NCBI GenBank assembly: GCA_964035545.1
Contig: OZ037773.1
Coordinates: 10,073,751-10,137,750 of the forward strand
Source: Bugula neritina
Taxonomy: Eukaryota; Animalia; Bryozoa
Length of the DNA: 64,000 nt
Reading direction: 5' to 3'
Under the pieces are notes generated by a model. The model did not search any database, was not told the origin of the DNA, and worked only from the letters and a program-made list of their open reading frames with translations. Both the position numbers and the translations under genes were made by a program. The stretch's first letter is position 1, and each line of letters starts with the position of its first letter. Of the stretch, positions 8,623 through 63,588 are shown piece by piece.

Positions 8623-8628
<6 letters not shown>

Positions 8629-19790: not shown

Positions 19791-20019
<229 letters not shown>

Positions 20020-20160
20020 ACAAGCTGTAGCTTTAAACTTGGCTGATAAAAATAGTCCGTGCTAATGTAGCTTACAATACATAAACATGCTATATTTAAG
20101 AAAACATGAATCAACAAAACTTTCAGGTGTAATAAGATATTTCTATGGAAGAATTCTAAC

Positions 20161-22741: not shown

Positions 22742-24855
22742 TTAATAGTAATGAACTCTAGGGTAATAACATTTGTGTGTGTTACATCTTCGTTTTCTGT
22801 AGCTGCTGCCAGTGCAGTGGTTTACTGTGCCGCTGTGATGACCATAAATATTCTTAGTCATGCAGGTTCTGTATCTTCTCTGTCCTCCACCACCACATGG
22901 CGCACTACATGCTCCCCACTCTCCCCACGGAGTCCATACTTTCTTTACTGCAAGTACACATAGTTACTGTACAAAGTACACTCTTCAAAAATCAATTGTT
23001 TGTGGTTTTATTGTCTTAGGTTTTAGTCGCCATATAATTGAACCGCATATTGATTCTCTTAAAGCCAGTTTTAACCAAATATTTGCAAATTAGGTCACCT
23101 TTTTTTATCAATTTAACAATGCATCTAATATTATGAGAACTATGTCTCTTAAATATAACTAATCAGAAGTTGAGCTTTTTGTAGAAATGATCATCTTTAC
23201 TTATTCAAGTGCAGCAATGAAGAAAGTGCTATGCTATACAATTCTATACTACTGTATTATTTACGTACGAATGCAATCATTTCTTAATTTTAATTCAACT
23301 ATTATATTCTGTGCATGAATGACTTTAAAGCTTGCGACAAAAATATTTTAAAGCGTAATAATGTTATTGAAAGCCGAAAATGTTTTCTCATATAGAAAAC
23401 AAGTTTTAAGCTTAACTATTATATTGCCATATGTTCTGTACTTTGACTATTGGCAAAAAAAGAATTCCTGATGTTAAAAAGGAATTTGAAATGAAAGAGT
23501 TTGTGAAACTCACCGATTCGATGATGCAATCCCTGACCTGGCTGCCAGGGTGTGTAGCTGGTAGCTGGCACACCTGAAATAAGACAGAATAATAAATTAA
23601 TCACACTGTATCCACATTTTCCATTACTATTGAAATACCAACTAAGGATATATATTAGACAGAAAATGCAATTAATGGAATAAGAAAAAAGAACAAGTTT
23701 TGTTTTATTTAGTTAAAAATATAAAATCATGCTACCACAAACTAAAATTTTGAAAAATATATATATGAAGTTCAATGAGACTCAAATACTTTGTCTGTAG
23801 CGGATATAGAACTTGAAAAAGTGATAAAAAATTAAGAAAATCACCACCTAATATATATATAAATAATAATAATATATATATAATAATAAACTGCAAGAAA
23901 TGGTATTTTAAACATCTTAATATTTTCATAAAATCTTAACTTACATAAAATAGCTGCCAGTCCAAGAAAGATCAACAGTCTGCAATCTGAAACAAAAGAG
24001 ATAAAAATTGCGAAAACATATAAAAGTTTATGTGACAAAATAGAAAGGTGTTGTGGTTTCCCAGTAAAGAGGAACACAGAAATTATCAGATTTTTAATGA
24101 TTAGCTGATTTAAAATTTGACTTTACTCAAACAATTATGATGCCTGAAGACTCATATTAAAAACATTTCAATTCTGAATTTTTTTTATTGAATAACAAAT
24201 AAAACCTACTCAATATTATACATTATAATTATAGTAAAGTATAGCTTGTAATATTTTCAGAGCAAAAAATATCGGCCAGTGCAAAAAAGTAGTATATTAT
24301 TGTTAAAATGATAAAATCCTCATAAGTATAAATTATTTAGTATTAATTTAAAATGAGAATGACTATTATGATGCTATAATTTTTATTTGATACTCATGTG
24401 TGTTTAAAATACAACATTCAAGATGTGTATTTAAGATTATATCCAAATTTCGGTCATATGTTTCTATTTCATCAAGTTTTTTGATCAAAATTAGGAAATA
24501 AAATCTGTAACGAACTTTAAGTTATAAAACTGTTTGGTGCAAATTAAATTTAGCTTTATTCTTGCTTTAACTCAAACTTATGCACTAGTTATTTCTAACT
24601 TATTGTATTTCAAATTAGAAAACTGGAAAATTTTTGAGACAAAATATATAAAATGTGAATGTAGTTTAAAAATAACGAGTGAAATAAAATAATAATACTA
24701 TATTTTCAAAAGACATCTTACATTAAATGAGCTGAGCAATGCAATGGTTTGTTGCTGAAATATGTTGCTGGGTTGATAAGCCTATAGAGGTGTTTATAAT
24801 TAGATAAGCTTTTGTAAAAGTTTATGATAATAATGTGAAAGATAGACTCACCCAT
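22742..24855 (-). CDS. Small secreted single-TSR (thrombospondin type-1 repeat) protein, subfamily A copy A0, about 103 aa
   Basis: Exons 24855-24852 (ATG+G), 23986-23945 (DCRLLIFLGLAAIL), 23573-23514 (CVPATSYTPWQPGQGLHHRI), 22947-22742 (VKKVWTPWGEWGACSAPCGGGGQRRYRTC..HC..RRCNTHKCYYPRVHYY*). TATA at about 24910-24920. Confidence 0.85.
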
Positions 24856-27784: not shown

Positions 27785-28061
<277 letters not shown>

Positions 28062-28664
28062 ACTGTATATAACTGCATATTATTTAATAGAAACTAAAAT
28101 TGGGAGTTAAAAACACGCAGTAGTATTACCATGCAGAGACTACTAGTTATCGCCAAGAATTTGCATGTTAGGTAAAATCAAATAGCTTTCATGATTTCAA
28201 AAGAAACCTTTGATTTTCAGAAAGATTATAAATATTTGTATAGCTTAGAAGAAACTTTACAAGTTGTTTTCTGTGCTGCTATATGTATATTACTGTATGA
28301 TATTGTTATAATATTATGTTAGTTATGTTACCAAAAGAAACATTTAATATGTTTTATTATATATGCTATTTATTTGAAAAACAAGTAAATTATACCTTCT
28401 AAAAAATAATTAAACAGCAAGACATGTTTTTGAAAGAATTAAACAAGCATAAATTATAAAAAAATCCACTATGGTATTGTTGAATTGCTAAACATACTCT
28501 AGTTAAAATTAAGGAAAGCTGATATTCATTGTGTTATCTTAATTATAATGCAATAATATATTCATTTCAGTTGCATCAAGATCACAAGGCAAATGGTAGA
28601 CCACAGTTTCATAGTTGGTTTTGTGACAACTAAATGGCAGCTATATACTAAATTGAACTTCCAA

Positions 28665-30827
28665 CTAGCCGCCATAACTTATACCCCAGGGAATTGTGTT
28701 GTCAGAAACAACTCTAGACTCTTTGCTCCTGCCATAGCAGTTTCTCCCTCCACAACTTGGGTGAGGGTAGCTGCAAGACCTGGTTCTGGTTTGTTTCTCA
28801 TTTCTGTGGCTAACAGCATACACCCTTGTCCAGTGAGACCACTGTCCCCACATACCATCAACTAGTAAAATTGTTCAGATTATATAATGGAACAGAACCT
28901 TGATGTTCTTTCTAACTAGAACTTATTTCTATTTAGTGAACTTAGAGTATGCTTTAAGCTGTATAAAACTAATAGCTGAAATGAATCAAATATATAAACG
29001 CATAATTTTTTTAACAATAAAAATCTTTCAAGTTTTCAAAGTGTTTTTGGTATTTAGGACTATATAGTAGAAAATTAACAACAAAACTATCATATTGATA
29101 GATAAATCTACTTCTAGTTTACTCAGTTTCATTAGCCAATTATATAATGCAATTCTCATTATAACTATATTAATGATAATATCATAAGAATATGTTTAAA
29201 ACTGGTCTGTAAAGTAGGCTATCTGAAAGAGGTATAGAGGTATAGAGAGCTTACCAGGACAGCATTGTGTGTTGCATCTTCTTTTCCTGTAGCTGCTGCC
29301 AGTGCAGTGGTTTACTGTTCCACTGTGATGGCCATAAATAGTCTTAGTCATGCAGGTTCTGTATCTTCTCTGTCCTCCACCACCACATGTCACACTACAT
29401 GCTCCCCACTCTCCCCACGGAGACCATACCTTCTTCACTACAAGATGATATACAGCTACTGTGCAAAATACACTTTCTAGAAAGCAATAGCCCCTTTTCA
29501 AAGGTCCCAATATTCCCTTTGGAAGTGGAAATTGTGTCCTCCCAAAGTGAGTAGTTGAACCTTTGTAATATAAAGAGCTATAACTCATTAAAAATTTAAA
29601 GTTTTGCCGTTACTTAAAATTCTAATCATGCTATAGAATTGTTCTTTTAGGAGAAATTTCTTTTGGTATATTTAGCACACATTGGCAGTTCAAAAAATTT
29701 TTTAAAAGTATTTCTTTATGGAAAAATTTAAAGTTAATAAGCCTGAAAACATTTTTGTGGCTTTGGTTGCTGAGCAAAGCTAAAATGGCACTTCAGCATT
29801 GCTCAGCAAGCAAATTGAGTTCTGGTTTGTTTTGTTCAACAATTTTCATTTTAGGAGGACACAACTCTTAATTGTCAGGGAACATTGGGACCTCTGAAAA
29901 TGCTAATAAATCCGCATTGTTACAGATGTACTATATTCTGTGAATTGCAGCACAATTTGTTTAAAATAAAAGAATATGTTTCGAGGCCAAAGATATTTTT
30001 ACTACAGAAAAATATATTTTCACAAGTTATATGCATTGATTATTTAGAAAATGAGAAGAATAGTCTTGACGTAAAAAGAAATAAAAATAAAAAAATCTGG
30101 GAGACCTACCGATGCGATGATGCAATCCATGACCTGGTTGCCAGGGTGTGTAACTGGCAACTGGAACACCTTAAATAAGACGCAATAACTGAGCAATCAC
30201 ACAGTATATACATTTTCCAATATTATTGATTATACAATATGCCAGACAAAAATAACAATAAAAACGAGCAAATTTTTATTTTATATGGGTAAAAATTGAA
30301 AATCATGCTACCTCAAACTAGAACTTTAAAAAAAATAAAAATTTTATTGAGAATAAAATACTATAGGTCTGTGGCAGATATATAGAAATTGAAAAAAGTG
30401 ACAAAAAGTTAGGAAAATCAAAGCGTTGATCGAAGATAATAATAATAAACTGCAAAAAATGATATTTTAAACATGTTAATATTTACATAAAATCTTAACT
30501 TACATAAAATAGCTGTCAGTCCAAGAAAGATCAACAGTCTGCAATCTGAAACAAAAGATACAAAATTTGTTGTGCATGAAAACATACAAAAATTTATAAT
30601 GAGACATTATATTGAAGTAGTATAGAAAATTAATGCACCAAAAAACTTAAATGATAGTGCTATAAATTAAAATGTTTTGTATTAAATAATCCGGTCAATG
30701 CGTAATGGTTTATCGCTGAAACTCTTTGCTGAGTTTACTGATAACATGAACTTAATAATTTATATTATTTGGATTGACAACTGTAAGAGTTTATGTAGGA
30801 TTTTATCCAAAAGATAGACTCACCCAT
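28665..30827 (-). CDS. Small secreted two-TSR protein, subfamily A copy A1, about 161 aa
   Basis: Exons 30827-30824, 30545-30504, 30169-30110, 29437-29255 (WSPWGEWGACSVTCGGG..CNTQCCP), 28861-28665 (VDGMWGQWSHW..RTRSCSYPHPSCGGRNCYG..SYGG*). All introns are phase 1 GT-AG. TATA at about 30881-30890. Confidence 0.9.
29488..29905. mobile_element. MITE-like insertion in A1 intron 3
   Basis: Long imperfect TIRs TTTTCAAAGGTCCCAATATTCCC..TGTGTCCTCC / GGAGGACACA..GGGAACATTGGGACCTCTGAAAA. Absent from the equivalent A0 intron. TSD is ambiguous. Confidence 0.7.
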
Positions 30828-31577: not shown

Positions 31578-31800
31578 AAACTCAAGCAAGTTTATAGTCT
31601 CCATCCCTGTGAGAAACTCCTGATGAAAAGGGTTTTTGTTAAATCAGGCTGAGGATTATTTAAATAAAGCACAGGAGCAATTATGACTGGATGCTCTTCC
31701 TAACATCACCAATGGCCTTTGTCCCAAACCCCAAATCCCAAACACTCGTGCTTCGTGTTTACTAGGCAAATGCTCTAACTCCTAGATCGCAGCTGCTCCC
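31578..31800 (-). mobile_element. tRNA-derived SINE, same family, B box replaced
   Basis: Colinear with 2314-2525 and flanked by TACC(C/T)AACTTTAAATA duplicates. The paralogous site at about 27200 is empty. Confidence 0.88.
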
Positions 31801-36040: not shown

Positions 36041-38344
36041 CTAACTATCCCAAGGGGTTGTGCCGTGAGGAACAACTCTGGACTCTTTGCTCTTGCCATA
36101 GCAGTTCCTCCCTCCACAACTTGGGTGAGGGTAACTGCAAGACCTGGTTCTGGTTTGTTTCTCAAGCCTTTTGTTGACAGCATACACCCTTGTCCAGTGA
36201 GACCACTGTTCCCACATACCATCAACTAGAAAAATTGTTTAGATCATATAATGGCACCTAACACTGATGTTCTTTCTAATTAGATATTATTTCTATTTAG
36301 TGAACTTACCCCCTGTTCACACATTGCCGTATTGTAAACCGTAACAGAACAAACAAAATGACGCCGCTGTTACGTTTTGTCAACAGGCGTTCACACATTG
36401 ACGAAAAGTACAGTGCATGACGTTGAGCTGTGACCAATCATAATGAGGCTAATTTTTGTCTGTAGTGATTTGTACGGCTTTGAATATTATTCACAAATTT
36501 GTCACATCATTTTTGTGAAAAGATGTTATATGAATGCTATTGACTAGATAAAAGCAATTAATTTAAATATATTTGTTTTTAAAATAACTGTGCAAAATAA
36601 TTTGAATAATAAATATTTAAGCCATTTAAATAATGTTTAAGTTTTTGGTTTGTGTACTTTTGTGATTCGGAAAAGATGAATTTTAAGCTGAGTTTAATTT
36701 GAACATTTTTTTAATCCTTTAAAACTCTTGAATTGGTTAAATTAAATCAAAAATAAGCGATTAAACTAAACTAGCAAAAATGTTCTTTAAATTTTAGTAC
36801 CAAATCAACTCTACCCAATGGAAGCCTGCTGTAATTTTTTGAATTAAGCACTATTTGACCAACGCCGTAGCGTATACCGGGGTACAATTCAGCCGGATGT
36901 TACCAAATATGGCGGACATTTGCTGTTACTGCGTACTGTACAGCAATGTGTGAAAGAGGGTTATAGACTAAGTTTTGCTGTATAAAACTACAAGTTAAAA
37001 TGATGCAAATTAATTGCATACATTTTTTAACAATTAAAATCGTTCCAGTTTTTAAAGTGTTTTTGGTACTTAGGGCAAGTAGAAAATTAACAACAAAACT
37101 GTCATTTTGATAAGTAAATCTACTTCTAGTATACTCAGTTTCATTAGCCAATTATATAATGCCTAATGTCATTATAACTATGATAATATTAATATTATAA
37201 GAATATGTTCAAAACAGGTCTATAAAGTGGGCTATCTGGAAGAGGTATAGAGGTATAGAGAGCTTACCAGGACAGCATTGTGTGTTACATCTTCTTTTTC
37301 CGTAGCTGCTGCCAGTGCAGTGGTTTACTGTGCCACTGTGATGACCATAAATATTCTTAGTCATGCAGGTTCTGTATCTTCTCTGTCCTCCACCACCACA
37401 TGTCACACTACATGCTCCCCACTCTCCCCACTCTCCCCAAAGGGACCAATTTTCATCAGCTAAAAATATTGATAAATTTTGTAGCTTTTCTTTTAAAATA
37501 TAGACGTTTCTTTATAAAATGAATGATTTGAAGTATACATGTACTATTTATAAATCACTTTGAATAAAAGCAATATTTGTTGTTGATGTTGTTTTTAAAC
37601 TCTAACTGTGTTGATCAAATCATATAGATAACTGTTGTAGGACTTACTTGCTCGATACACAGGTAGGTTATAGGCACCTGAAAGTAGCAATAATATAGAA
37701 TATTAGAATCATATTGGTTCAAATCACTCTTAATATAGTCAAAAGTGGAATTCTCTACTTTTTCTATCAATGCACAGACACGCGTAAAACAAGTCATTTT
37801 GCTTTGTCATGTGGGAATTGATATATACTGATTGTTAAAAGTATTGTATTTTATGAAAAATAGTCACAACGGTGTAAACTTTCTACTAGAAAAATTACCA
37901 ATTCTCATATTTATGTATATATTATTAGTAATCAAAAATCAAAATTTTTTTTTTATTAGCAACTTTATATCAACTTGTAGACAATTTTATTTTAAACATA
38001 ATTTGTAATCGAAGCGGAATAATTTAAGTAAAAAGATTAAATGTAAGTTACTCACTGCAGAATACGACTGCAAGTCCAAACAAGATTATTAGTCTGCAAT
38101 CTGAAATCAGAAACATTAGTTTATGTAATCATTTAGAAATAAAACTAGCTTTAGCCAACAAATTAATAAATTCATATGTATTGTTTAGTAGCTGACAATT
38201 TCATTTTTATTCAAGAGAGTGGAAATTATATAAGTATTAAAACATTTGTTATCTGTTTTAGAAAAAAAATAATAAATCTTAAATTGAAAATATTTAAATA
38301 AAGCATACATTTTATTTGTAATATATGTAAAAAAACTCACCAAT
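36041..38344 (-). pseudogene. Chimeric two-TSR gene A2; reading frame open but start codon reads ATT
   Basis: Exons 38344-38341 (ATT+G), 38100-38056 (DCRLIILFGLAVVFC), 37677-37648 (SAYNLPVYRA), 37459-37268 (TDENWSLWGEWGEWGACSVTC..CCP), 36225-36041 (..PHGTTPWDS*). TATAAAA at about 38396-38402, and no ATG in exon 1. Confidence 0.7.
36309..36960. mobile_element. Harbinger-like non-autonomous element in A2 intron 4
   Basis: TIRs CCCCCTGTTCACACATTGC / GCAATGTGTGAAAGAGGG, TTA TSD at 36306-36308 and 36961-36963. The paralogous A1 intron (about 28940) has a single TTA empty site. Confidence 0.88.
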
Positions 38345-38817
38345 GATGCTCAGGTTTCTGGTGTGGAATGACTACTTGTCAGAGAGTTATCCCACTTTTA
38401 TAGTTTTTATTAGCCGTTTTGCATGCATTACAAATAATGCAATATAGTTAGGGTTAATAACCTTTCATGTTGAGTAATTCTTGTCCGGAATAACAAGCTC
38501 CCAAAATAGAAACCCGTAGACACATTAGGTTGTCGTATAAATATAGGATTTAAGAACATATGCACCATAGCAAGCTGGGCAAGATGAAACATGCCACGTA
38601 CTGATTTATTGAACAAAATTTATATGATTATGCAAAATCCATATATGTACCTAAAATATATTTAGCAAACATTGGTAATCAACACGAATTTGTAATTAAC
38701 ACACTAACAATTATATCTTTGTAATCAAACTTCACCTTTATCTTATATAGTTTGAAGTTTTCACAAAGAAAAGACTAGCAACTTAAATGCACACAGTCAC
38801 TTCAACAGATGTATGGT

Positions 38818-41340
38818 AACGCAGCCTGAGGGATGTGTACAACCTGCATGGATAAAGACAGAGAGCTCTGGGATATGAATAGCATCTGGCCAAAAATTAT
38901 GCCACAAACTATTATAGTTTATGGCAAGCTGCATATTTAAGAAGATATAAGACACACAATGTTCTAGTCAAAGGGCTATAATGTCCTAAGAAAGTGACCT
39001 TCAAAATTATATAGGTCGTTTTCCCAAAGTGTTTGCCTCAACTTGTTAAGTCATTTGTAAATCAATCATGCCAAAATTTATATCAAATCATTATATATGT
39101 ATTAATTTGCATGGCTAAGCAACTTAAATGTAAAAATTGACTTATTGGCATATGTGTTCATAGACTCTCTATCTCCTATAATTTATGAATTATTAAGAAC
39201 TTTTTTGATTTTTCGATGTGATATAGTTAGCATGAGTAAGCAGAAATTTTACAAAAACATTGTGAAATTGGGAAACCATTTATTTTAATAATAGCTTCAT
39301 GAAAAAATGTGATTTTTGATGTTATCTATTGACCTCTAATTACCCTAGACTCTAGAGCCTAAAATTGCACTATTCATAAAACTATTACATGATTATAGAG
39401 AATTAAAAAAATTAAATACTTTTATATATAAATACTTTATTTTTAAAATTTAATTTTAATCATTGAGCTTAAAAACATATATTAAATGTAACTTGAGAAT
39501 ATAGTTTGAATATGTTAACTTCTTTGTACTTAGCAGCACACAGCACACACAGTACACTTGCATGTCTGTTGTATTTAATAATCTAATCACAAGTGGTTCT
39601 TTAGATCAATATTATATTGCATTAACTTTATTCATTGTGAGAGCTGTTTGTGTTGAGTTTTGTCTCATTAACTTGACTATCTCCCAGTTTGTTTGAGTTC
39701 AGTTGCATGTTTCTTTTTTATTTTTTTTTAAATGACTGATACATATTTGCATGTTTTTTTGTGTATTTTTTCTCAATATGAAATTAATGTAGAGGTATGA
39801 ATTGCTCATGTTTTATTACAGAAAAAAATTTAAACAAGTTTTAACAAAAAGTGAAATGAAAACATCATATCAAGTAAGTTAGGCAATTAAAAAGCAACAA
39901 TTTGTAAAATTACACCATGTAACTAGCAGTAACTGAACATTACATCAAGCATCAAACTAAATTGTTTAGCACTTATAATTGCAAACAAATGAACAGGGTA
40001 TAGCAGGTGGCTTAGTATCCCCATGATTTTGGAGCAAGGGTTGGAGGTGGAGAGTAGGCGGCCCGTGTTTGATGCCCGGATCCATAGCAGGATCTACCGC
40101 CACAACTAGGTGCTGGATGGTTGCAGTATCTGGTGCGGCTTTGTTGACGGTAACCATAGTGACTGCCATGAGAGTTTGACCAATGAGTCCATTGCCCCCA
40201 GTTCCCATTCACTACAGAAATATATATAAATAGTTTCTGCAAAGTTGTGTCCACATAGTTTAGGGGAAATGTCATCTGGATATTAATTAGCTTCAGTGCA
40301 TTCCTGTTGGTAACTAAGCAACCAGCTGCACAACAAATAATTTCCTGCTGTACTCTCTACCAGGCAATTAAATAGTCATATATCAACACATTATGCTAAG
40401 TATATGCAGATTTCATATACAAATGGAATTAGTGTGTCTTTATTTTTGCATTGGTTACCTGGACAGCAATGTGTGTTGCATCTCCTCTTGCGGGAAGTTC
40501 TACCTCCTCGACAAGAGTCTACGTCATGACTATATCCGTAGACAGTCCTACTACTGCACGTTCTGTAGATTCTCTGCTCACCCCCTCCACATGCCCTACT
40601 GCAGCTGCTCCAGCTGCTCCAGGCACTCCAACTTCTTTCAACTGCAATAAAACCAATTGTTTTGTTAATCGATAAGTGTATTTGTTTACTATAGTTTAAT
40701 GCATGGGGGTAAACATTGGTTAGCTTATGAATAGTATTCGGAAAACTGTGTTAAAGCAGTTGCTTTTTATTAGACCAGCTTTATTTTGTATATTAAGTAT
40801 ATTATTCCTATTTAGTTATCGTCATCATGTCGACATTAGAAATGCCTTTGCTTACAAAGCAGTGCTACCATAATTATTTTAGTAATCCTAACAACTCATG
40901 TTTGGAATTCAATTTAGCACAATATGGATGTACACAAATCATGTTATCTGTCCACTAACTTCTATTACACGAACATGTTTTCATAATATAAACTGTGTTC
41001 TGTACAAACTTACCATAAGAATGGTGAGGGGGTGGTGCGGTTGGTTGGGGATAGTGAGGACGCCATGGTGCATAACCTGAGGCTAAACCTAAAATAGTAA
41101 ATATACTAGCATGGCACAGTGTTCATAATGCAAATATATAATGATTCTTAAACTAAAATAAAAGAAAAACAGTCTTTAATTAAACAGCATGTGTTTTTAG
41201 CTTTCCTAATATGTGTAATAGAAGCCAAGAATAGTGCTTTGCAATTACTTAAAGTTAATATTTTTTTCTAATACATTAAAACATGGCAAACGGCCTAAAT
41301 AATACTTCATAATATTATTTTAGGGAGCAAAACGCTGCTT
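38818..41340 (+). repeat. Segmental duplication, direct copy of about 54196-56710 (subfamily B block)
   Basis: Colinear, high identity from AACGCAGCCTGAGGGA to GGGAGCAAAACGCTGCTT. Confidence 0.9.
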
Positions 41341-44757: not shown

Positions 44758-45483
44758 GCTGTGCTCGTTCTGTGGTATAGTTTGACTAAGTACCATATCA
44801 GTAAAACTCACACACATATAACATGTTTCTTTGACAATTATTATTTTAGCTTTGACCATTGAGCTACCATCATCATTGCTAAGAAATACGTATTTATATC
44901 TAAACAAAAATACTATAACATATTACGAGTACAATATTACATTACACTGATGTAATGGTGTAGTATATTGACCAGTAATTGGCATATATATCACCTGAAC
45001 ACTCAAAATAAATATTCAACAAAGAAGAAAATATTGAAAAGTAGTTAAATAATTAATTTATTGTTATTAGTATTTTTCATTTTAATTTGCCACATATAGG
45101 CAGTCACCAAACAAAATGCAGATACATGCGTGTATTTAAAACATACAGCCTATAAAGAGCTTCACAAATATAGTTGTTTTTAAGCATTCAATATAAGTTG
45201 CAGTGTAATAAGTTTATTTTATTTACTGTGCAATTAAATCATCATAGTAATACTATCCATCAGGAAATTTGGCATTTAAATTATTATACTCAAAATTACT
45301 GGAAAAACAAATAAATCGCTGAGAATAACGTAAACATATTTGTATAGGACGTTTTATTTGAAGCTAAATAGATAGGGTGATGTAATTTTATTTGAGTGCG
45401 TCTAGCTTATTGACCAGAGCTCAAATAAATTGTTTATATTATTTAGATTATTTAAATTTTACCTACTAACCCATTGATGTTGC

Positions 45484-45621
<138 letters not shown>

Positions 45622-47444: not shown

Positions 47445-48633
47445 TTACCATGTTTCTATACCTGGGCAGTATTGCTGGTTACACCTGCGTTTGCTATAGT
47501 TACTTCCAACACATCTGTTGATGTCTCTTCCATGTCCACCAGAAGATTTAGTCTCACAGGATCTGTATCTTCTCTGTTCTCCACCACCACATGTCACACT
47601 ACATGCTCCATACTTTCCCCATTGACCCCATTCACGTATTACTGTAGATTAGAAACATCAGCACAACTCAAACAGAGTAAATATAATATGAATAAATTAC
47701 CACCATGAAAGTGAAGAGTAACAATATACACAATTATTAGGTAAAAGCACAGAAACTCATGTCTGTGATGATACTTACCATGTGGTCTACGGTGATGTTT
47801 CTTGCCATGAACTTTAGCCGTCATATCTGAACATTTAAATATTAAATTTATATAAACTTAAACATATCTTTGTTATTTAATTAGAAAACATTTTTGTTGA
47901 AACGAATAACGATTGAAAAAAATACTTTTTTTAATACCAAGATTGATATTTATATATGCATAAGACAACAGGTGTAAACTTGGCTACTTGGCAAGTGTGA
48001 ATATGACACTTCTAGAGCAATATTTAGGAGGAAGACAACTTACCACAATTCATTCTACGGCTACAATACCCTTCTGCCAAAGAGCCTGAAAGTTTAAATA
48101 AATTATGTGTGAATATATTTATATATAGATATAATAAAAAACAACTAGAAAATGTTTGTAGTACTTTGTTCATTTCAAAAGATATAACTCAAATATACAA
48201 TATGCAGTGGTATTTGAGATAACATAGGCTTCACTTATTTAAATAAACAAAGTAGTGTTTAAAAACAGCATATACAGAAAGTATTCGGTTGGATAACTGT
48301 AGCCAAAATACTGTTTTTAAAATAAACAATATATCACTTTGTATAAATATTAGTGTCATTTAAAATATATTCTATCTGTTTGCAAAACTTTAATATGTCA
48401 GTATACTTACATATGCATAAAGCCAGCGCCAAAAATAAAACAACTCTGGTATCTAAAAAATTAATAGAAAATTAGGGAAAACAATATAAATGATTGAGTT
48501 TATTTACAAAACAACACACTGTAATGAGTAATTACTTTTACAGTTGTTATAACAACAACATTTAACAAAAACAGGTTCCTAACTTTTAGTGTAAAATGAG
48601 CTTTCATGCAAGCTATAAAACTGACTTACCCAT
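47445..48633 (-). CDS. Small secreted single-TSR protein, subfamily C copy C2, about 110 aa
   Basis: Exons 48633-48630, 48452-48411 (DTRVVLFLALALCI), 48085-48044 (CSLAEGYCSRRMNC), 47826-47779 (DMTAKVHGKKHHRRPH), 47641-47445 (..RRCNQQYCPGIETW*). No TSR2 exon is visible downstream. Confidence 0.8.
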
Positions 48634-51600
48634 TCTTCTCGTCAAAATATATATTCTACTGTGAAATACTAACAGGTAATAATAAAGAAGAGATTTGAAG
48701 CCAGCTTTATATACCCTGTAAATTACTGTTTTGATATACTGGCACACGACATTTGTTTCATCAATTACAATATTTCATTTACCTTCAGAATTTATTATTT
48801 ATGTTTATTGCCAATAAATGGGAAGTGATTCAGCTATTTGAATCATTTTTATAAGATTTAATCAACTTGGATGCTTGATTTATTTATATGCCAAAAAATC
48901 AAAGCAATTAATTAATTATAATTTATAAGAAGTACAGAAATGGGGTTGTTTACCTAATAAAAGCTTTAGACATTATTCTATATCACATCTTCAGAAAATT
49001 TATATGTAACTACTCAAATTTAGGTTTATCCAAATTGCTTTATTGCTTTTACTGCAAGACTCATGTAATCAGCTTGACTCAACGTGCTGAATGTAATCGC
49101 AGTATTTGATTTATAAATATGGGATCGTTGTACCGGAAAAATTTTGTCAAATGGTGTGCCTTTGCATAAACTGTGAGTTTTTGCTCTAATATATTTTGCT
49201 GTTTATATAATGTTTTACAGTTTATAACTAAAAAGATATTGAGCACACAAAATTAACCTAAATAGAAAGATATGTTTTGGTTCAGCAACTTATAGACAGA
49301 ATTATTTTATTAGCAGTTAATTAAAACTACAAAACAATTGATTTGATTATATTTTTATGTGGAATATTAAACTTATTTGTTGATGTCATATGCTAGAATA
49401 TACATCATGTAACCAACCTGTTCAATACAGTTTATCTTAAAAAACAACTGACAATATAATCAAGTATTTATCTGATTATTTTCACTATTTGTGATATCTG
49501 GATCAAACCAGTTATTTACTAAGTCATTGACCTTTGAATTGACATTTGAAGTGTGGTTATATTAAAACTTTTTTGCTAAAAATATTTTACTTACTATCAA
49601 TTCTTCAAAGTGGCATGACTTGCTTATTTCTTGAATATTGCAGCAATATTTCTTATAATGCAACGTTATGACACATCATCAATCTATATTCTGTCTGAGA
49701 TGACTTGGTGCTTTTAGCATTATTTAGTTTTATTATTGTCATGTGACCTTGTCCTTTGTTAAGTTCTTTGATACCAATAAACTATGCTTATTAATACGTT
49801 AATTCAAAGCTTGGACCGAATAATTTTATCAACAGTTACTTAAAACTGCAAAACAACTGACTATTATCCTTGTATGGGGAACATATTAAACTCATTTGTT
49901 GATGTATTATGCTAGAATATACATCACGTATTAGAAATTTGTTTATTACACTTTAACGTAAAGAACAATTTTCTTAGTAGCTTGGTATAGTCAAAATTAG
50001 TCCTAGAACAATTGTTATCCAACGGTCACATGTTATAGTGCTATTCAGCTAATGTGCATATATACCAAGTGAAATGACATCTTAGATCATTGTGATATGG
50101 TGATTTTAAGTGACTATAATATAATAAAGTATATATCTGATTATTTTCACCATTTATGATATCTATAGATCAAACCAGTTTTAATTGACATTTGAAATGT
50201 GAAAGGCTGATGGCTCAGTAATAAAATATTTCAAATTCTTCAGCAAACTAAAACAGGTAAATGTAGCCTTAAATAAAGCTGTGAGTGACAAACAACCTAA
50301 TTTTGAGGCATAAAATAGTACATTCAGAGCAAAAATAACTCTCATCTGTACTTTTCCGATTATATTTTGATTGATATTCCTCTATAATCGCTTTATTGCT
50401 TTGAAATTCTGACATATAAATAAATCAATGGTTCAACTTATTTTCGTACAAAAATGGTTCAAATTGCTGAATCACTTGTCATTTATTGGCAATAAATTTA
50501 AATAATAAATTGTGAAATGAGATCTCGTAATTTATGAGAAAATAGTTGTGTGACAGCATATCAAAACAGCAATTTACAGAGTATATAAAGCTGACTTCAA
50601 ATATCTTCTTTATTATCTATCAGTATACTTCACAGTAGAATAACTAAAATAAGAAGAAGAATGGGTAAGTCAATTTTATGCATGGAGACTTATTTTGCTT
50701 TGAAAATCTTTTACATTTATATGTTGGTAAACCTTTTATAGTTATTATATACCCATTCTAGTGGTTTGTTCTTAAAATAAATTAATTGTCTTATGTTATT
50801 GTTTCTCCTAATTTTACTTCAATATTTTAGATACCAGAGTTGTTTTATTTTTGGCGCTGGCTTTATGCATATGTAAGTACTGACATATTAAAGTTTTGTA
50901 AGGAAATAGAATAGTTTTTATATAGCCAGTAGGTAATCAATTTAAAGAGAAAATTATATTTTTATTGGGTTTAAAAAGTCTTGTTGCTACAGTTGTCCAA
51001 CCTGATGCTTTCTATATAATTTATGTTTGTTGAAACACTACTTTGTTTATTTAAATAAGTGAAGCCTATGTTATCTCAAATACCACTGCATTGTATATTT
51101 GAGTTATATCTTTTGAAATGAACAAAATACTACAAACATTTTCTAGTTGTTTTTTATTATATCTATATATAAATATATTCACACATAATTTATTTAAACT
51201 TTCAGGCTCTTTGGCAGAAGGGTATTGTAGCCGTAGAATGAATTGTGGTAAGTTGTCTTCCTCCTAAATATTGTTCTAGAAGTGTCATATTCACACTTGC
51301 CAAGTAGCCAAGTTTACACCTTTGTCTTATGCATATATAAATATCAATCCTGGTATTTAAAAAAGTATTTTTTTCAATCGTCATTCGTTTCAACAAAAAT
51401 GTTTTCTAATTAAATAACAAAGATATGTTTAGGTTTATATAAATTTATTATTTAAATGTTCAGATATGACGGCTAAAGTTCATGGCAAGGAACATCACCG
51501 TAGACCACATGGTAAGTATCATCACAGACATGAGTTTCTGTGCTTTTACTTAATAATTGTGTATATTGTTACTCTTCACTTTCATGGTAGTAATTTATTC

Positions 51601-51770
51601 ATATTATATTTACTCTGTTTGAGTTGTGCTGATATTTCTAATCTACAGTAATACGTGAATGGGGTCAATGGGGAAAGTATGGAGCATGCAGTGTGACATG
51701 TGGTGGTGGAGAACAGAGAAGATACAGATCCTGTGAGACTAAACCTTATGGTAGATATGGAAGAGACATT
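47530..51770. repeat. Large inverted duplication (arms about 47530-48900 and 50420-51770) placing C2 and C3 head-to-head
   Basis: Exons 2-5 and introns 2-4 are near-identical reverse complements, with a spacer of about 1.5 kb. Confidence 0.9.
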
Positions 51771-52428
51771 AACAGATGTGTTGGAAGTAGCTATAGCAAA
51801 CGCATGTGTAACACTCAGTGCTGTGCAGGTAAAATCTTAAACCTCATTATGTAATATATATTTGTAAAAACGTTTTTGTAAAAAATATACTTATTTAAGA
51901 ATGTATTATTATAGAGCTGTATGGGAGGCTATTTAGCACCTATAATATATAAAAAATAAAATAATGCTAAATGCAGGTAATAATAAACTCATAGCTTTAG
52001 TTAATTACAACTTTTATTGTCAACATATACGTTATAAATTTTTAATACTTCAAGTTCTTATAAAAATAGTTTTCAAATGAGAATTTAAACTTAAATAGTG
52101 CCTATATAGCAATATAATATATTATAACAGTAAATATAATACATAATACACTGTTATGTTGGAAGATTTACAATTTAAAAAGTTACAAGTTGTACTTGAA
52201 CGTATCTGCTACTATGTAAACAAAGTAAGTTTGTTGTGAAATGCTGTAGTTGATGGAGTGTGGAGCCACTGGGAGATAGGAAGGGGTTAGTCGAACAGAC
52301 AAGTGCTACAAGCAGATGAGGACAATATACTGTAGATATGAGAATCATCACTGCCGAGGGAAACTGACAAACAAACCCAGAGTTATAATGGTAGCGTTAG
52401 AGATTACAATTTTCCTGGCAAAGATTAG
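50661..52428 (+). pseudogene. Subfamily C copy C3: exons 1-5 intact, TSR2 exon disabled
   Basis: Exons 50661-50664, 50831-50872, 51206-51247, 51464-51511, 51649-51828. The last exon, from 52250, has an in-frame TAG at 52288-52290, a frameshift, and a deletion of the codons for PCVG at about 52364. Confidence 0.75.
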
Positions 52429-53767
52429 TATAATGTCTTCATTTGTGATGCTGTAGACGACCGAAAACATTTTGCATAAACAAGAGTGACTTTTGCTGAA
52501 ATATTTTGTTCTAAATTGCACCAGTTCTATAAAAACTAAATAATTGCTGGTCTCATTTAAATAGGAGTTGTTTTTGTGTTTTGCTGTTTTTAAATGTAAA
52601 TTTATTTTACAAAATAAATGCTCAGGAACATAAAGTTTGACTCACTTGTTATTCTAGATTGTCGAGGAGGGAGGGGGGGGGCTGACCCCTCTCCTGTATC
52701 TCAACACTAATAAAATGTACATTTTCTCAATTAGTTTTGCTACAATTAGTGTGTGTATTTTTTTCATATTTAAAATTTTTAAGTTATTTGTTGATGTCAT
52801 ATGCTAGAATATACATCCTGTAACCAACCTGTTCAATACAGTTTATTGTAAAAAAACAACTGACAATATAATCAAGTATTTATCTGATTATTTCAAACTA
52901 TTTGCTATAAAAAATAATTACTCTTCAAATTTCAGATAATATAAAATAAAATATCTAAGAGAAAGTAATTATACATATTATGCATATAATTTGCTGTTTC
53001 AGTTTTGCAGACATAATTGTTAAAGTGTATTTGCATAAAATACCTGTGTAAAAATTACCAATTTCTAATTCTAAAGCTTCTCAGTTAAACTTTGAAGTTT
53101 TATTATATACTTAGCTCACAGTAAAAGTGTTATGTGCAATTAAATTAATTAATCATATTATACAGTATACTTATGTTCATGAATGATGATGCAGTAATAA
53201 AATTTCAAATTCTTTAGCAACCTAAAACAGGTAAATGTAGCTTTTAATGAAGCTGTGCATGACAGACAACCTCATTTTGAGAAGTAGAACAATACATATT
53301 CTTAGCAAAATTAATAATTTGATATTTTGAAATAAAGTTGCAATGCAAAATTATTGAAGAGCTTTTATATACAACTTGGGCAGTTAGATGTAATTCTCTT
53401 ATAGATGTGATGTAGCCCAGTGTCCAGCTATAACGAGGTGAAGGACCCTTTTTAATCCTTTGATTTCATGCACTTAGATGGACATTTCTCATCACTTTAT
53501 TGCTTTAAAATTATGACATATAAATAAATCAAACCTTCAACTTGTTTTCATATCAACATGGTTCAAAGAGCTTAATTACTTCCCATTTATTGGCAATAAA
53601 TATAAATAATAAATTCTGAAGGTAAATGAAATATTGTAATTGATGATACAAAGGTTGTGTGACAGCATATAAAAACAGTGATTAACAGAGTATACTAAGA
53701 CTACTTCAAATCTCTTCTTCATTATTACCTGTTTGTACTTCACAGTAAAATAAATATAGGAAGGAGA

Positions 53768-54001
53768 ATGGGTAAGTCAATTTTATGCATGGAAACTTAC
53801 TTTATTTTGAAAATCTTTTGATATGTTAACAAACTTGTTTTTATTAAATGTTTGCTATAAAAACTATATAAAACCTTTTGTTTATTATAGTGTTTTGTTT
53901 ATAAATGAATTGAATGCCTTATAAATATTGTATCTCCTAATTTTAATTTAACTTTTTAGATTCCAGGGTTGTTTTGTTTTTGACACTGGCTTTATACATA
54001 T
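53768..54001 (+). pseudogene. Truncated subfamily C copy (promoter, ATG exon and signal-peptide exon only)
   Basis: ATG-G|GTAAGT at 53768-53771; exon 53960-54001 (DSRVVLFLTLALYI). Homology to C1 ends at about 54155, just before the duplicated B block. Confidence 0.75.
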
Positions 54002-55386
54002 GTAAGTACTAATATCAAAGTTTTGCAAACAAATAGAATATACTTTTTTGTCAAGAATGATTTTTAAATTAAGGTAATATAAATTTAATTGATTTTTAAA
54101 AAATACAGTTTCTAAATTTATCTAATCTAATGCTTTCAATATATACATTAAATTCAAATTATAATACTGCTAATTGTGTATTTAAATTGTATGTTAACGC
54201 AGCCTGAGGGACGTTTACAACCTGCATGAATGAAGACAGAGAGCTCTGGGATATGAATAGCATCTGGCCGAGAAATATGCCACAAACTATTATATCATAG
54301 TTTATGGCAAGCTGCATATTATTTAAGAAGATATGAGACACAGAATGTTCTAGTCAAAGAGCCATAATGTCCTAAGAAAGTGACCTTCAAAATTATATAG
54401 GTCGTTTTCCCAAAGTGTTTGCCTCAACTTGTTAAGTCATTTGTCAATCAATGAAGCCAAAATTCATATCAAATCACTATATAAGTATTAATTTGCATGG
54501 CTAAGCAACTTAAATGTAAAAATTGACTTATTGGCATATGTGTTCATATAATCTCTATCTCCTTATATAATTTATTAATTACTAAGAACTTTTTTAATTT
54601 TTTGATGTGATAGAGTTAGCATGAGTAAGCAGAAATTTTACAAAAACACTGTGAAATTGGGAAACCATTTATTCTGATAATAGCTTCATGACTAAATGCT
54701 ATTTTTGATGTTATCTATTGACCTTTAATTACCCTAGACTCCAAAACCTAAACTTTTACTATTCATAAAACTATTACATGATTATAGAGAATTAAAAAAA
54801 GTAAATACTTTTATATAATTACTCTATTTTTTAAATTCAATTTTAATTATTGAGCTTAAAAACATACATTAAATGTTACTTGAGAATATAGTTTGAATAT
54901 GTTAACTTCTTTGTACTTAGCAGCACACAGCTTGGTAAGCTCATCTGTTGTATTTAATAATCTAATCATAGGTGGTTCTTTAGATCAATATATTGCATTA
55001 CCTTTATTCATTGTGAGAGCTGTTTGTGTTGAGTTTTGTCTCATTAGCTTGACTGTTTCTTATTTAGTTTGAGTACAGTTATCATCAGAATCAGAATGTT
55101 TAGAGCTACTTGACTAATCTGATTGTTGCATGTTAGTTTTTGTATTTTTTTATATAAAATTAATTTATATATTAATTGCTCATGTTTTATTAAAGAAAAA
55201 AAAATTAAACAAATTTTAACAAAAAGTGAAACGAAAACATCATATTATGTAAGTTAGGCAATTGAAAAACAACAATTTGTATACTTACAACATGTAACTA
55301 GCAGTAACTGAACAATATATCAGGCATCCAACTAAATTGTTTAGCACTTATAATTGCAAACAAATGAACAGGGTATAGCAGGTGGC

Positions 55387-57623
55387 TTAGTATCCCCATG
55401 ATTTTGGAGCAAGGGTTGGAAGTGGAGAGTAGGCGGCCCGTGTTTGATGCCCGGATCCATAGCAGGATCCACCACCACAACTAGGTGCTGGATGGTTACA
55501 GTATCTGGTGCGGCTTTGTTGACGGTAACCATGGTGACTGCCATGAGAGTTTGACCAGTGAGTCCATTGCCCCCAGTTCCCATTCACTACAGAAATATAT
55601 ATATAAATAGTTTCTGCAAAGTTGTGTCCACATAGTTTAGGAGAAATGTCATTTGAAGATTAATTAGCTTCAATGCATTCCTGTTGGTAACTAAGCAACC
55701 GGCTGCACAACAAATAATTTCCTGCTGTACTCTCTACCAGGCAATTAAATAGTCATATATCAACACATTATGCTAAGTATATGCAGATTTCATACACAAA
55801 TAGAATTAGTGTGTCTTTATTTTTGCATTGGTTACCTGGACAGCAATGTGTGTTGCATCTCCTCTTGCGGGAAGTCCTACCTCCTCGACAAGAGTCTACA
55901 TCGTGACCATATCCGTAGACAGTCCTACTACTGCACGTTCTGTAGATTCTCTGCTCACCTCCTCCACATGCCCTGCTGCAGCTGCTCCAGCTGCTCCAGG
56001 CACTCCAACTTCTTTCAACTGCAAAAAAACCAAGTGTTTTATTAATCGATAAGTGTATTTGTTTACTATAGTTTAATGCATGGGGGGGGGGTAAACATTG
56101 GTTAGCCTATGAATAGTACTCTGAAAGTTGTGTTAAAGCAGTTACTTCTTATTAGACCAGCTTTATTTTATATATTTGTCATATTCCTACTTAGTTATCG
56201 TCATCATGGCTAAGTTTCAAATACATTCTTACAAAGCAGTGCTACCATAATTATTTTAGTAATCTTAACAAATCATGTTTGGAACTCAATTTAGCACAAT
56301 GGATGTACACACACTGCTATCTGTACACTAACTTCTATTACACGAACATGTTTTCATAATATAAACTGTGTTCTGTACAAACTTACCATAAGAATGGTGA
56401 AGGGGTGGTGCGGTTGGTTGGGGATAGTGAGGACGCCATGGTGCATAACTTGAGGCTAAACCTGAAAGTGTAAATATACTAGCATGGCACAGCATCTATA
56501 ATGCAAATATAGAATGATTCCTAAACTAAATTAAATCATACGCAAGAAAAACATTCTTTAATTAAACAGCATGTGTGTTTTAGCTTTCCATATATGTGTG
56601 ATAGTGCTTTGCAATTGCTTAAAGTAAATAATTTTTTGTAATACAATAAAACATGGCAAACGTCCTAAATAATACTTCATAATATTATTTTAGGGAGCAA
56701 AACGCTGCTTTCCATTGGTCATTGAGCTTTTATAACCCAGAATAAAATAATGTTACATTTTCAACTTACATATATATAATTCACTTTTATAGGAAGCTGA
56801 AATAAAGTTATTTTTATATATGCTAGGCGCAATCTATTAGTTTGGTGAAAATACAAGAAGATCTTTTACGCTGACCAATATTCAAACGCAATAATAAGCA
56901 ATTAAAAGTGCAGTTGAAAAGTTCGAAACCTAAAAAGTGTAAACAGCCCCTACCAAAATTATTTGAAACGTTAGCTGAATATTATATCTTTTAGAACAAA
57001 TACTCATGAAGGAACTGCATAGATATTAATAGACAAGCATATTGACTTTAGATGATTAGGCTCTTATATTGGAAAATACATATATTGTGTATGATTACAT
57101 TGTATGCATGGAGGTATATTTACCTAATTAATTTACCAATACAATACAATACATGCATATACAACTGAATATTACTTACAAAAGATGGTAGTAAGTCCAA
57201 GCAACACCAATATTTTCTGATCTAAAACAAAATACAATAGTATTAGTGTGAACAAAGTAACTTTTTTATTTCTATGAATTAATCACCTCATTCATGTACT
57301 TGATAACACTCACAACTTAGCATAAGTTATAATTCACTGTGAAAATAAGATAAGACAGTGATAAATATTGTATATTGTACTGCTTGTTTAAGTTTTAAAC
57401 TCATTTTGTATAAATTACAGACCTATGCATGTAATTACAATCTATTGCACTTCTATATAAGTGTTCAATTATTCTAAAGTATTAAAACAGCTTTTAAAGT
57501 AGTTTTGTATTAAAACTATGAAACTGTGCTAGCTGTAAAAACATACCAATTGCAGTTGATTGCCTATATTTTTAGAAGCTTTGTATTTTGTTGTAACTAT
57601 AGTATATAATATAACTTACCCAT
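55387..57623 (-). CDS. Small secreted two-TSR protein, subfamily B copy B2, about 167 aa
   Basis: Exons 57623-57620, 57221-57180 (DQKILVLLGLTTIF), 56461-56387 (CLASSYAPWRPHYPQPTAPPLHHSY), 56018-55836 (WSAWSSWSSCSRACGGG..CNTHCCP), 55586-55387 (VNGNWGQWTHW..CNHPAPSCGGGSC..KSWGY*). TATAAATA at about 57674-57681. Confidence 0.9.
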
Positions 57624-59394: not shown

Positions 59395-59428
<34 letters not shown>

Positions 59429-59479
59429 ACAAAAATACACGAACTAGAAAAAGCGTTTCACCATTTTGCTTATCTATAA

Positions 59480-59850
59480 AATGAATATATAGAAAACTCA
59501 ACTCATGGATACACTGACAACTGAAATGATATAGGCCTTACATTATTTAAATAGACAATTAGCAGTATTTGAACAAATGTATATATAAAGTAATAAGTTG
59601 GATAATTGTAACAACAATCCTTTTTTAAAATTAATTAAATTTATATTACCTTCATTTGGAAATTATACCTGACTAAAAGCTATTCTATTTCCTTGCAAAA
59701 CTTTGATAGCAATACTTACATATGGTGCATAAAGCTACCGTAAAAACAAAACAACTCTGGAATCTAAAATTTTAAATAAAAATTAAGAGATAATATAAAT
59801 ATAAAGCATTTAGTATATTTTTAAAACAAAACACCACAATAATTAAAATA
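59480..59850 (-). pseudogene. Orphan, frameshifted subfamily C signal-peptide exon with flanking intron remnants
   Basis: Exon-like stretch 59763-59720 (44 bp, against 42 or 45 bp in paralogs; in-frame TAG). The flanks match C1 introns 1 and 2 in reverse orientation. Confidence 0.65.
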
Positions 59851-61086: not shown

Positions 61087-62693
61087 ATGGGTGAGATATT
61101 TGTCGGATATATTTTTACATATAGTTATATTGTTTATTATTACCATGCTTGGTGTTGCTATAAAAACATGCTAAATGTAAAAACTGTCTGTTGCTTAATT
61201 TATAATTTTTATCTTTGTTCCAGCGACGTTTTATACTTCACCATAGTGTTTGTTTATATAAAACACCATAAGTAAGATATTAGATATTTGATAAATGGCC
61301 GTTGAATTTTTGCATAACATAAATGATACTAATTATTCACTGCTATTATATATAATACAAGTCATACATTAATATACATGAAGTTCTATTTTGATATAAT
61401 TACACCATTTGACTATATCTATTTATGTATTAATTTTGATTAAATTTTTAGTCATGAAATTTTTGGTTGTTCTCTCCTTCGCATCAGTTCTATGTAAGTA
61501 TTTGCTAACTTACTTATGTTTAGGGTAACATCTTAATCTAAATATTATGAAGATGATGTATTATTTAAATTTGAAGAAAAGGCTTTTAAAACTATGATTT
61601 GGAAAAACACTATTAAGTATGATATATAATACCATTCTCAAAGTATGATATATAATATAAAACCATTATATTTAAATGTTTAGGTTTGTTGACAGACGGC
61701 TATGGCCTAATTGGCAGAAGATACTATACTCGACCAAATAGCAACTACCATCGCAGTGGTATGTTTATATGCTCTTGATTATTACATGTTACATCATTTT
61801 TCACACAAGTCAAATAACCAAGTTTAAACTATTTTTAGTTTCTATGCTCATAATCATGGTGCTTATCTATACTCTTAACAGTCATATTAACATTCAATCA
61901 TCTTGAGTTGTGGTAATATTATTTCTAATCTACAGTAATACGTGAATGGGGCCAATGGGGAGAATATGGAGCATGTAGTGTGACATGTGGTGGTGGAGAA
62001 CAGAGAAGATACAGATCCTGTGAGACTAAACCTTCTGGCGGATATGGAAAAGACATCAACAGATGTGTTGGAAGTAACTATAGTAGACGAATGTGTAACA
62101 TTCAATGCTGCCAAGGTGAGCTCTTGAAACTTTTTGTGCAATTCACTTATAAAAGTCTGTAGTAGAGAGAATGTTTATTAAAAGTTTTATCATTTTATAT
62201 TTGGGAGCCTATTTAATACCAAGTTGTTCATTAAAGTAATGTTATATCATAGGTTGCACTAAACTCTTGACTTAAAGGTAAATAAATTTTTGGTCAAGTA
62301 TCATTTTAAAATTTTGACGACTGTAAAATTTATCTAAAAATAGTTATCAACCGGCAATTGAAAGATGAATACGATTTAACAATATAATAAATAACAATAA
62401 ACATAATATATAACGTAATGCAATGTGATAAGTCTCATGATAATAATATACTTGAACATCCTTGTCGCTGTGTGAAGAGAATAAAAATTATTTGAACTGC
62501 TGTAGTTGATGGAGTGTGGAGTGACTGGTCTAACTGGGTGAGTAGGAAGGAAGTAGTTTATAAGCGGATGAGGACAAGATACTGTAGATATGAAAGTCCT
62601 CACTGCCGAGGGAAACCCTGTGTTGGTGCTGACCAACAGACTCAAAGTGGCACTGGCCGTATTGAAGATTATCGAGGACCAGGCAAGAAGTAA
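61087..62693 (+). CDS. Small secreted two-TSR protein, subfamily C copy C6, about 162 aa
   Basis: Exons 61087-61090, 61452-61493 (VMKFLVVLSFASVL), 61684-61758 (CLLTDGYGLIGRRYYTRPNSNYHRS), 61936-62115 (TSR1 ..CNIQCCQ), 62506-62693 (TSR2 ..YRGPGKK*). TATAAAA at about 60993. Confidence 0.88.

Positions 62694-63407: not shown

Positions 63408-63588
<181 letters not shown>

Follow-up and report, generated by a model that had tools for sequence, protein, structure and literature searches.

Layout of the gene cluster

The window analysed here is a stretch of 64,000 nucleotides (nt) of chromosome 9 of the bryozoan Bugula neritina (contig OZ037773.1, positions 10,073,751 to 10,137,750 of the forward strand), and its positions 22742-62693 hold an array of duplicated genes predicted to encode miniature secreted, cationic proteins made of one or two thrombospondin type 1 repeats (TSRs). 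The window is AT-rich (27-32% GC) and has no long open reading frames (ORFs). In the array, a six-frame motif scan recognised nine canonical TSR exons, which read WxxWxx[W/Y]...CSxTCGGG...RxYRxC (TSR1), and six second, TSR-like exons with a Trp ladder, an RxRxC strand and few cysteines (TSR2). Splice-aware models, built from in-frame peptide anchors and the scoring of GT/AG sites, give nine TSR-bearing gene units (g1 to g9) and two leader-only remnants, which correspond to the roughly 11 copies or fragments over 40 kb that an initial annotation, made from the sequence alone, had counted. The three subfamilies that it proposed are recovered by self-comparison of the window, namely A (g1-g3), B (g4 and g8) and C (g5, g6, g7 and g9), and its protein lengths of 103-173 aa and outer ends (the stop codons of g1 at 22742 and of g9 at 62693) are reproduced exactly. 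Within the three groups the duplicated units are 73-97% identical and have conserved exon boundaries, a resemblance far beyond chance. Six of the nine units (g1, g2, g5, g6, g8 and g9) are apparently intact and three (g3, g4 and g7) are damaged; two models are incomplete at the 5' end. The units and remnants, which lie on both strands, are the following.

22742-24855, minus strand: g1 (subfamily A), intact single-TSR gene, 103 aa; exons 24855-24852, 23986-23945, 23573-23514 and 22947-22742
28665-30827, minus strand: g2 (subfamily A), intact two-TSR gene, 158 aa; exons 30827-30824, 30545-30504, 30160-30110, 29437-29255 (TSR1) and 28861-28665 (TSR2)
36041-38095, minus strand: g3 (subfamily A), two-TSR gene, first exon undetected; exons 38095-38056 (signal), 37459-37268 (TSR1) and 36225-36041 (TSR2)
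40012-44757, minus strand: g4 (subfamily B), two-TSR gene without a signal-peptide exon; exons 44757-44754 (exon 1), 41088-41014 (leader), 40641-40459 (TSR1) and 40211-40012 (TSR2)
41737-43466, plus strand: g5 (subfamily C), intact two-TSR gene, 173 aa; exons 41737-41740, 41902-41946, 42296-42331, 42571-42636, 42755-42934 (TSR1) and 43276-43466 (TSR2)
47445-48633, minus strand: g6 (subfamily C), intact single-TSR gene, 110 aa; exons 48633-48630, 48452-48411, 48085-48044, 47826-47779 and 47641-47445
50661-52453, plus strand: g7 (subfamily C), gene with a decayed TSR2, 113 aa; exons 50661-50664, 50831-50872, 51206-51247, 51464-51511 and 51649-51854
53768-54002, plus strand: leader-only C-type remnant, exon 1 and signal exon with nothing downstream
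55387-57623, minus strand: g8 (subfamily B), intact two-TSR gene, 167 aa; exons 57623-57620, 57221-57180, 56461-56387, 56018-55836 (TSR1) and 55586-55387 (TSR2)
59688-59782, minus strand: C-type signal-exon remnant, frameshifted
61087-62693, plus strand: g9 (subfamily C), intact two-TSR gene, 162 aa; exons 61087-61090, 61452-61493, 61684-61758, 61936-62115 (TSR1) and 62506-62693 (TSR2)

Some junctions allow a choice or were placed indirectly: the third exon of g2 may use an alternative in-frame acceptor at 30169, and the TSR1 donors of g5 (42934) and g9 (62115) were placed by homology. The damage differs from unit to unit. In g3, which has no His/Tyr leader exon, no ATGN exon followed by GT was found within 1.6 kb upstream, so that the gene is either 5'-truncated or provided with a divergent first exon. 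The homology between g4 and g8 stops at 44337, immediately before the signal exon, and a search for an alternative signal exon of g4 found none. The plus-strand gene g5 sits, in the region 39900-44800, between exon 1 of g4 (44757) and the remaining g4 exons (from 41088 downward), and the corresponding interval of the paralogue g8 measures only about 0.5 kb and contains the signal exon, which g4 therefore seems to have lost through an insertion or rearrangement. The ratio of nonsynonymous to synonymous substitution rates (dN/dS) between g4 and g8 is 0.23, and g4 is probably a recently disabled copy. In g7 the remnant of TSR2 (about 52254-52453) is frameshifted, and the homology between g6 and g7 ceases directly after the g6 TSR exon. 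The homology of the leader-only remnant at 53768-54002 ends at 54193, where the g8 duplication unit starts.

Gene structure and protein features

The encoded order is a signal peptide, a variable leader of 15-35 residues rich in His, Tyr, Arg and Pro (carried by one or two short exons), a TSR, usually a second TSR, and a short tail, Tyr-rich or ended by Gly-Lys-Lys, before the stop; this is the architecture, with a degenerate second repeat, that the initial annotation had described. Each gene consists of four to six tiny exons, and the placed introns are all GT-AG and all in phase 1. The first coding exon, where found, is only 4 nt long, ATGG (ATGA in g5), and is followed by GTAAG or GTGAG. 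A TATA box stands 58-94 nt upstream in eight of nine first exons, for instance 65 nt 5' of the ATG in g1, and none lies within 110 nt of the first exon of g4. A promoter of about 180 bp is conserved within the C subfamily, including g5 and its TATA box, and when the leader and promoter cassettes were compared with neighbouring non-TSR genes, DNA similarity was found to be subfamily-specific only.

Judged by hydrophobicity and N-terminal features, all the units except g4, which is devoid of that exon, carry a classical signal peptide, with a Met-Asp, Met-Asn or Met-Val start and then a hydrophobic core (mean Kyte-Doolittle value 2.7-3.4 in the seven full-length models and 3.25 in g3). The mature proteins are rich in Arg, Gly, Tyr, His, Trp and Cys and, as anticipated, strongly cationic, with an isoelectric point of 9.2-9.9 and a net charge of +9 to +15. 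Leader and tail are variable in comparison with the conserved core.

The C termini of the C subfamily read ...Pro/Gly-Gly-Lys-Lys-stop, as seen at window positions 43449-43466 and 62676-62693 and at chromosome 9 positions 10141115, 10149367 and 10152546, and the Gly-Lys-Lys ending is conserved in at least five copies of the subfamily. Gly-Lys-Lys before a stop has the form of a signal for C-terminal amidation, which it may be.

A canonical repeat and a reduced one

TSR1 contains the WxxWxxW/Y ladder, the CSxTCG motif, the RxR strand and six canonical cysteines, and the invariant columns of its alignment are W4, W7, C13, S14, C17, G18-20, R23, R26, C28, C44, C54 and C59. All nine TSR1 exons match the Pfam family TSP_1 (PF00090), seven of them at 32.7-41.1 bits, above the gathering cut-off of 21.6 bits, and the two B-class exons, including that of g8, at 20.5 bits, just below it. 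In subfamilies A and C the E values are about 1e-8 to 1e-10 (1.5e-9 for g1, 2e-10 for g2, 4e-9 for g5 and 1.3e-9 for g9).

TSR2 retains the Trp ladder, the Arg-x-Arg strand and the C3-C4 pair, and its three cysteines are C3, C4 and one extra cysteine in a loop, with other residues at C1, C2, C5 and C6. It therefore lacks the full set of three intradomain disulfides (C1-C5, C2-C6 and C3-C4), and in Pfam, as seen for g2, it gives only sub-threshold matches to TSR families (E 0.05-0.3). That TSR2 is nonetheless a derivative of a TSR is supported by three sequence comparisons. A profile of the six exons retrieves TSR-array proteins down to E=1e-164, across positions 1-55 of 60, and three sampled matches were confirmed by Pfam as TSP_1 proteins; MAFFT repeatedly stacked TSR1 on TSR2 at the Trp, Arg and Cys columns; and, set in a 33-row alignment beside pieces of other proteins with two TSRs, TSR2 follows canonical second repeats column for column. 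An AlphaFold2 model of a public two-domain protein, calculated from the 33-row alignment (mean predicted local distance difference test score, pLDDT, 70.5; a run on a shallow alignment gave 44), has two TSR-type strand pairs, with long B and C strands in both halves, and its best matches in the PDB are repeats 2-3 of thrombospondin-1 (3r6b) and properdin, over 115-120 columns. Two points limit this support: the direct comparison of TSR2 with TSR1 by hhalign is weak when taken alone, at a probability of 30%, and the alignment fed to AlphaFold2 was itself made of canonical TSR pairs, the fold being judged from its strands and PDB matches.

A putative interdomain disulfide of the properdin type

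In the two-TSR forms, TSR1 has seven cysteines, ending C-x-x-x-C-C, and TSR2 has three, of which the extra one lies in a P-x-C-G-G loop (7+3 in g2, for example). The CC pair and its partner in TSR2 are kept in 13 of 13 two-TSR units over 240 kb around the window. In both intact single-TSR genes one cysteine of the pair is replaced and the stop codon lies within the same exon: the g1 repeat (six mature cysteines) ends CNTHKC, followed by a Tyr-rich tail, and that of g6 (6+2 cysteines) ends CNQQYC. The count of mature cysteines is even in all six intact genes (6, 8 or 10), and is odd (9) only in g7, which retains the CC pair and has a broken second exon.

The two features also covary elsewhere. 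Among 754 neighbouring TSR pairs from 150 unrelated matches, CC and loop cysteine were found together in 33, CC alone in 4, the loop cysteine alone in 28 and neither in 689, an odds ratio of 203, the 33 co-occurring pairs stemming from only seven proteins and being hence non-independent. In the crystal structure of human properdin, a Cys132-Cys170 disulfide joins TSR1 to TSR2, and Cys133 forms the canonical intradomain bond (PMC6713926); the CC pair and loop cysteine of the Bugula proteins and of human properdin stand at aligned positions. From this precedent, together with the 13 of 13 retention, the cysteine parity and the covariation, the extra cysteine of the CC pair most likely bonds to that of the PxCGG loop, and would thus tie the reduced TSR2 to TSR1.

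Seven unnamed public multi-TSR proteins are runs of such apparently locked repeats, each with CC at the end of one TSR and an extra cysteine in the next PxCGG loop. Judging from these sequences, the properdin-type interdomain disulfide may define a widespread, little-noticed type of TSR array.

Evidence on whether the units are real genes

Paralogue comparisons give dN/dS values of 0.2-0.5, both for whole genes and for each TSR exon (0.2-0.4 in most pairs), and all are below 1, the value for g6 against g7 being 0.71. Within the C subfamily, exons are 81-95% identical, in comparison with 68-87% for introns.

Independent gene models exist in public databases. The TSR exons are 90-98% identical to B. 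neritina proteins in GenBank and UniProt. The description of the array as invisible to ORF calling holds only in part, since partial or full spliced models are present in the public annotation of 2020. That annotation was made by AUGUSTUS with transcriptome hints and named by eggNOG (PMC7576161). The 'HMCN1' model KAF6026036.1 is 98% identical to g4 over its TSR2 exon and has the junctions of the g4 and g8 models, and together with its relatives it shares the leader-TSR1 and TSR1-TSR2 junctions of the models presented here. The 'C9' models KAF6021493.1 and KAF6034802.1, of a sister subfamily, are full-length, with a Met-Asp start and a signal peptide. The 'HMCN1' and 'C9' models represent either these very genes or near paralogues of them, at 96-98% identity and with an unchanged TSR1-TSR2 junction, and in the public B-class models the N termini are wrong and the signal exons were missed.

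Two paralogues about 100 kb upstream, at chromosome 9 positions of about 9970504-9970860 and 9975394-9975801 (minus strand), encode TSR1 and TSR2 contiguously. Their ...CCP-VDG-W... junction is the spliced junction of the models, the upstream leader introns are retained, and the TSR2 of both has a fourth cysteine. Recombination with a spliced copy would be the simplest way to account for the loss of the TSR1-TSR2 intron.

Taken together, the units very probably encode real secreted TSR proteins, and their expression is predicted from the sequence. Two observations pull in the other direction. The length-limited protein database matches include no transcript-derived full-length ORF. Moreover, since three of the nine units are damaged, turnover is high. 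Contigs from three sequencing runs of one study, none recorded as RNA, have no bearing on expression: over 38000-43900 they resemble genomic DNA and cover intron sequence, and their apparent joints fall off the exon borders; the joint 42937 to 43268, for example, rests on a contig of 444 nt in which 330 letters between the two sides are unaligned.

In two of the runs, the contigs match little besides the TSR exons (90-95% identity), and carry diverged introns of the same length. With exons conserved and introns not, these contigs resemble DNA from paralogues or from a divergent genotype.

Extent of the family

The window is one segment of a larger cluster on chromosome 9 with at least 24 such exons. 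In the whole genome the TSR2 profile matches 116 places, of which 24 lie on chromosome 9 at 9.81-10.18 Mb, all with E <= 6e-10, and only three comparably strong matches are found outside this cluster. Directly downstream of the window, chromosome 9 positions 10139395-10156900 and 10166375-10174714 hold about six further copies of the C type, part of them truncated or left with a decayed TSR2, as well as a fourth subfamily in three copies, whose tails read ...VRVH(L/R)PHY.

Length-limited protein searches, in collections without other bryozoan genomes, returned only models from B. neritina, fragments from metagenomes and a small number of generic TSR pieces; they gave neither an orthologue of similar length in another named species nor a full-length orthologue of any characterised family. 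The protein search with the TSR2 profile likewise gave no small relatives among the 150 matches listed, which are mostly large TSR arrays, a look-up in the ESM Atlas gave generic TSR clusters only, and the literature on Bugula searched with thrombospondin or hemicentin yielded no description of the TSR family. The family is a lineage-specific, rapidly duplicating expansion of a very common domain, and to call it the best candidate for an undescribed system in the window, as was first done, overstates the case. Already known are the domain class, small secreted proteins made only of TSRs in other animals (the sea-anemone protein TSRL; PMC12817120) and family members deposited under automatic names. 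What appears to be new, as far as the sequences tell, is that the proteins are of such miniature build, that a second TSR with one internal disulfide would be locked to the first, and that a bryozoan-specific cluster has reached this size and turnover.

Other repeats are present in the window. A 217-bp segment, 98% identical and inverted, occurs at 41353-41569 and 49775-49559, where two duplication units have their edges; its conservation greatly exceeds that of its flanks, and it may be a piece of a mobile element or the tract of a recent conversion. Long (TA)n microsatellites, at 8460-8627, 19790-20020, 27788-28080, 45488-45618 and 63410-63590, are the source of most self-matches of the window. 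A separate set of repeats of 0.6-1.6 kb, 73-90% identical, occupies 9243-21218 (e.g. 10997-11711, 14910-15511, 17759-18443 and 20491-21218).

Comparison with known TSR proteins

Properdin is the closest parallel for the two-domain lock. In both, TSR1 ends CC-P and TSR2 has its extra cysteine in an N-x-P-x-P-x-C-G-G loop; a Bugula B-class protein can be aligned with properdin along the two domains (E=2e-16), and properdin also figures among the top fold matches. Properdin is 469 aa long, in contrast to 103-173 aa, and the Bugula proteins have neither its TB domain and TSR3-6 nor its oligomerisation or convertase-binding architecture, and in their TSR2 the disulfides C1-C5 and C2-C6 have been lost, as has the O-fucosylation motif. 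The likeness is one of structural device and not of orthology, and the same lock recurs in unrelated TSR arrays. Thrombospondin-1 provides the best sequence match for TSR1 (7yyk, E=3.5e-22) and, with 3r6b, the best fold match. In the Bugula proteins, however, the TSR stands nearly alone in a tiny secreted protein instead of in a large modular matrix protein, and the second repeat is cysteine-poor and below the Pfam threshold.

The automatic names are not borne out by domain content. Hemicentin-1 is composed of a vWA domain, a long immunoglobulin array, and EGF and fibulin-type modules, whereas in the public 'HMCN1' model Pfam finds only TSP_1 and the Bugula proteins are 103-173 aa long. Complement C9 combines a TSR with LDL-receptor class A and MACPF domains, whereas the public 'C9' model, of 147 aa, has only PF00090 and PF19028.

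Small or modular secreted, cysteine-rich TSR proteins are also found in marine attachment materials. TSRL of the sea anemone Diadumene lineata is a 25 kDa protein with three TSRs, whose recombinant form self-assembles into gels and adsorbs to surfaces, and TSR-containing proteins occur in the bivalve byssus, including TSP1-domain byssal proteins of Pinctada (PMC12817120). Compared by description only, the Bugula proteins differ from TSRL in having one or two TSRs and His/Tyr/Arg-rich ends.

Possible functions

The roles first suggested for the proteins, as adhesive, cuticle or mucus components or as antimicrobial or opsonic proteins, are conjectural. A role of the proteins as small matrix-binding, cross-linking components of the cuticle or of an adhesive is slightly favoured, with an immune role close behind. 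Each gene would be transcribed from its own TATA-box promoter and spliced from its four to six tiny exons with phase-1 introns, and the properdin-type bond would lock the reduced second TSR onto the first. The cationic Trp/Arg face would then bind anionic glycans or matrix, and the variable Tyr/His-rich ends would supply cross-linking or metal-coordination sites. Drawn by analogy with other TSR proteins, this role is plausible, though tentative, and it is a point against it that the sequence contains nothing that separates a structural from an immune role. With somewhat more reserve, it can be proposed that the genes represent a bryozoan-specific miniature TSR class, in which a canonical TSR and a disulfide-tied, one-disulfide TSR are combined with exchangeable Tyr/His/Arg ends that tune a cross-linker or surface binder; such a class would act in the cuticle, in larval glue or at host-microbe interfaces, and would be a minimal TSR scaffold undescribed in any animal.

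The proteins might instead be humoral immune or symbiosis effectors, such as opsonins, pattern recognisers or antimicrobial peptides, whose ends diversify under host-microbe pressure. The proteins are small and highly positive, the family shows birth-and-death dynamics (three copies are damaged), the ends vary around a conserved core and the TSR pair is of the properdin type, all of which is in keeping with such a role, as are the Gly-Lys-Lys tails of the C class, a possible amidation signal. Nevertheless, every dN/dS value stays below 1, whole exons show no sign of diversifying selection, and the likeness to properdin goes no further than the two-domain lock, the proteins having neither a TB domain nor TSR3-6; on balance this role is rather unlikely.

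It is improbable that the proteins are soluble modulators of extracellular signalling, which would bind growth factors or glycosaminoglycans in budding or metamorphosis. Short TSR-containing signalling regulators do exist, namely the CCN proteins and R-spondins, and the Bugula proteins are likewise small and secreted. According to PMC2173040, the TSRs of thrombospondin-1 bind glycosaminoglycans as well as activating TGF-beta. Two dozen fast-turning paralogues with low-complexity ends would, however, be unusual for conserved signalling regulators, and no orthologues outside Bugula were found among proteins of similar length.

The cluster could also consist mostly of decaying duplicated DNA, pseudogenes without a current function, as the g3 unit without its first exon, the g4 unit without its signal exon, the frameshifted TSR2 of g7, the two leader-only remnants and the dN/dS of 0.71 between g6 and g7 might suggest. 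This is very improbable in the face of six units with unbroken reading frames, splice sites that fit the consensus, promoters and even numbers of cysteines, of dN/dS values of 0.2-0.4 in most pairs, and of exons more conserved than introns. That the TSR exons are parts of one or a few long, for instance hemicentin-like, multi-TSR genes, to which the name HMCN1 of public fragments and the multi-TSR arrays elsewhere in the B. neritina genome would lend colour, is contradicted by the alternating orientation of the units, by the TATA box, ATG exon and signal exon that each has of its own, by the in-frame stop within the TSR1 or TSR2 exon of each and by the public models, in which Pfam detects no family outside the TSR type, so that the alternative can practically be set aside and the units are separate small genes, as first annotated.

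Implications

The names HMCN1 and C9 are misleading for these genes, and models that bear them are unsuited to comparative studies of complement or of the matrisome. If expressed as predicted, the proteins would be among the smallest natural TSR proteins, and would offer a natural experiment in TSR stripping, in which a domain goes from three disulfides to one and borrows its stability from the neighbouring domain. As a fouling organism B. neritina is of major importance, and it harbours a bryostatin-producing symbiont (PMC7576161). Because of both these traits, and because the family is large and fast-evolving, these secreted cationic TSR proteins constitute a candidate set for the chemistry of the bryozoan cuticle and attachment or for host-microbe recognition.

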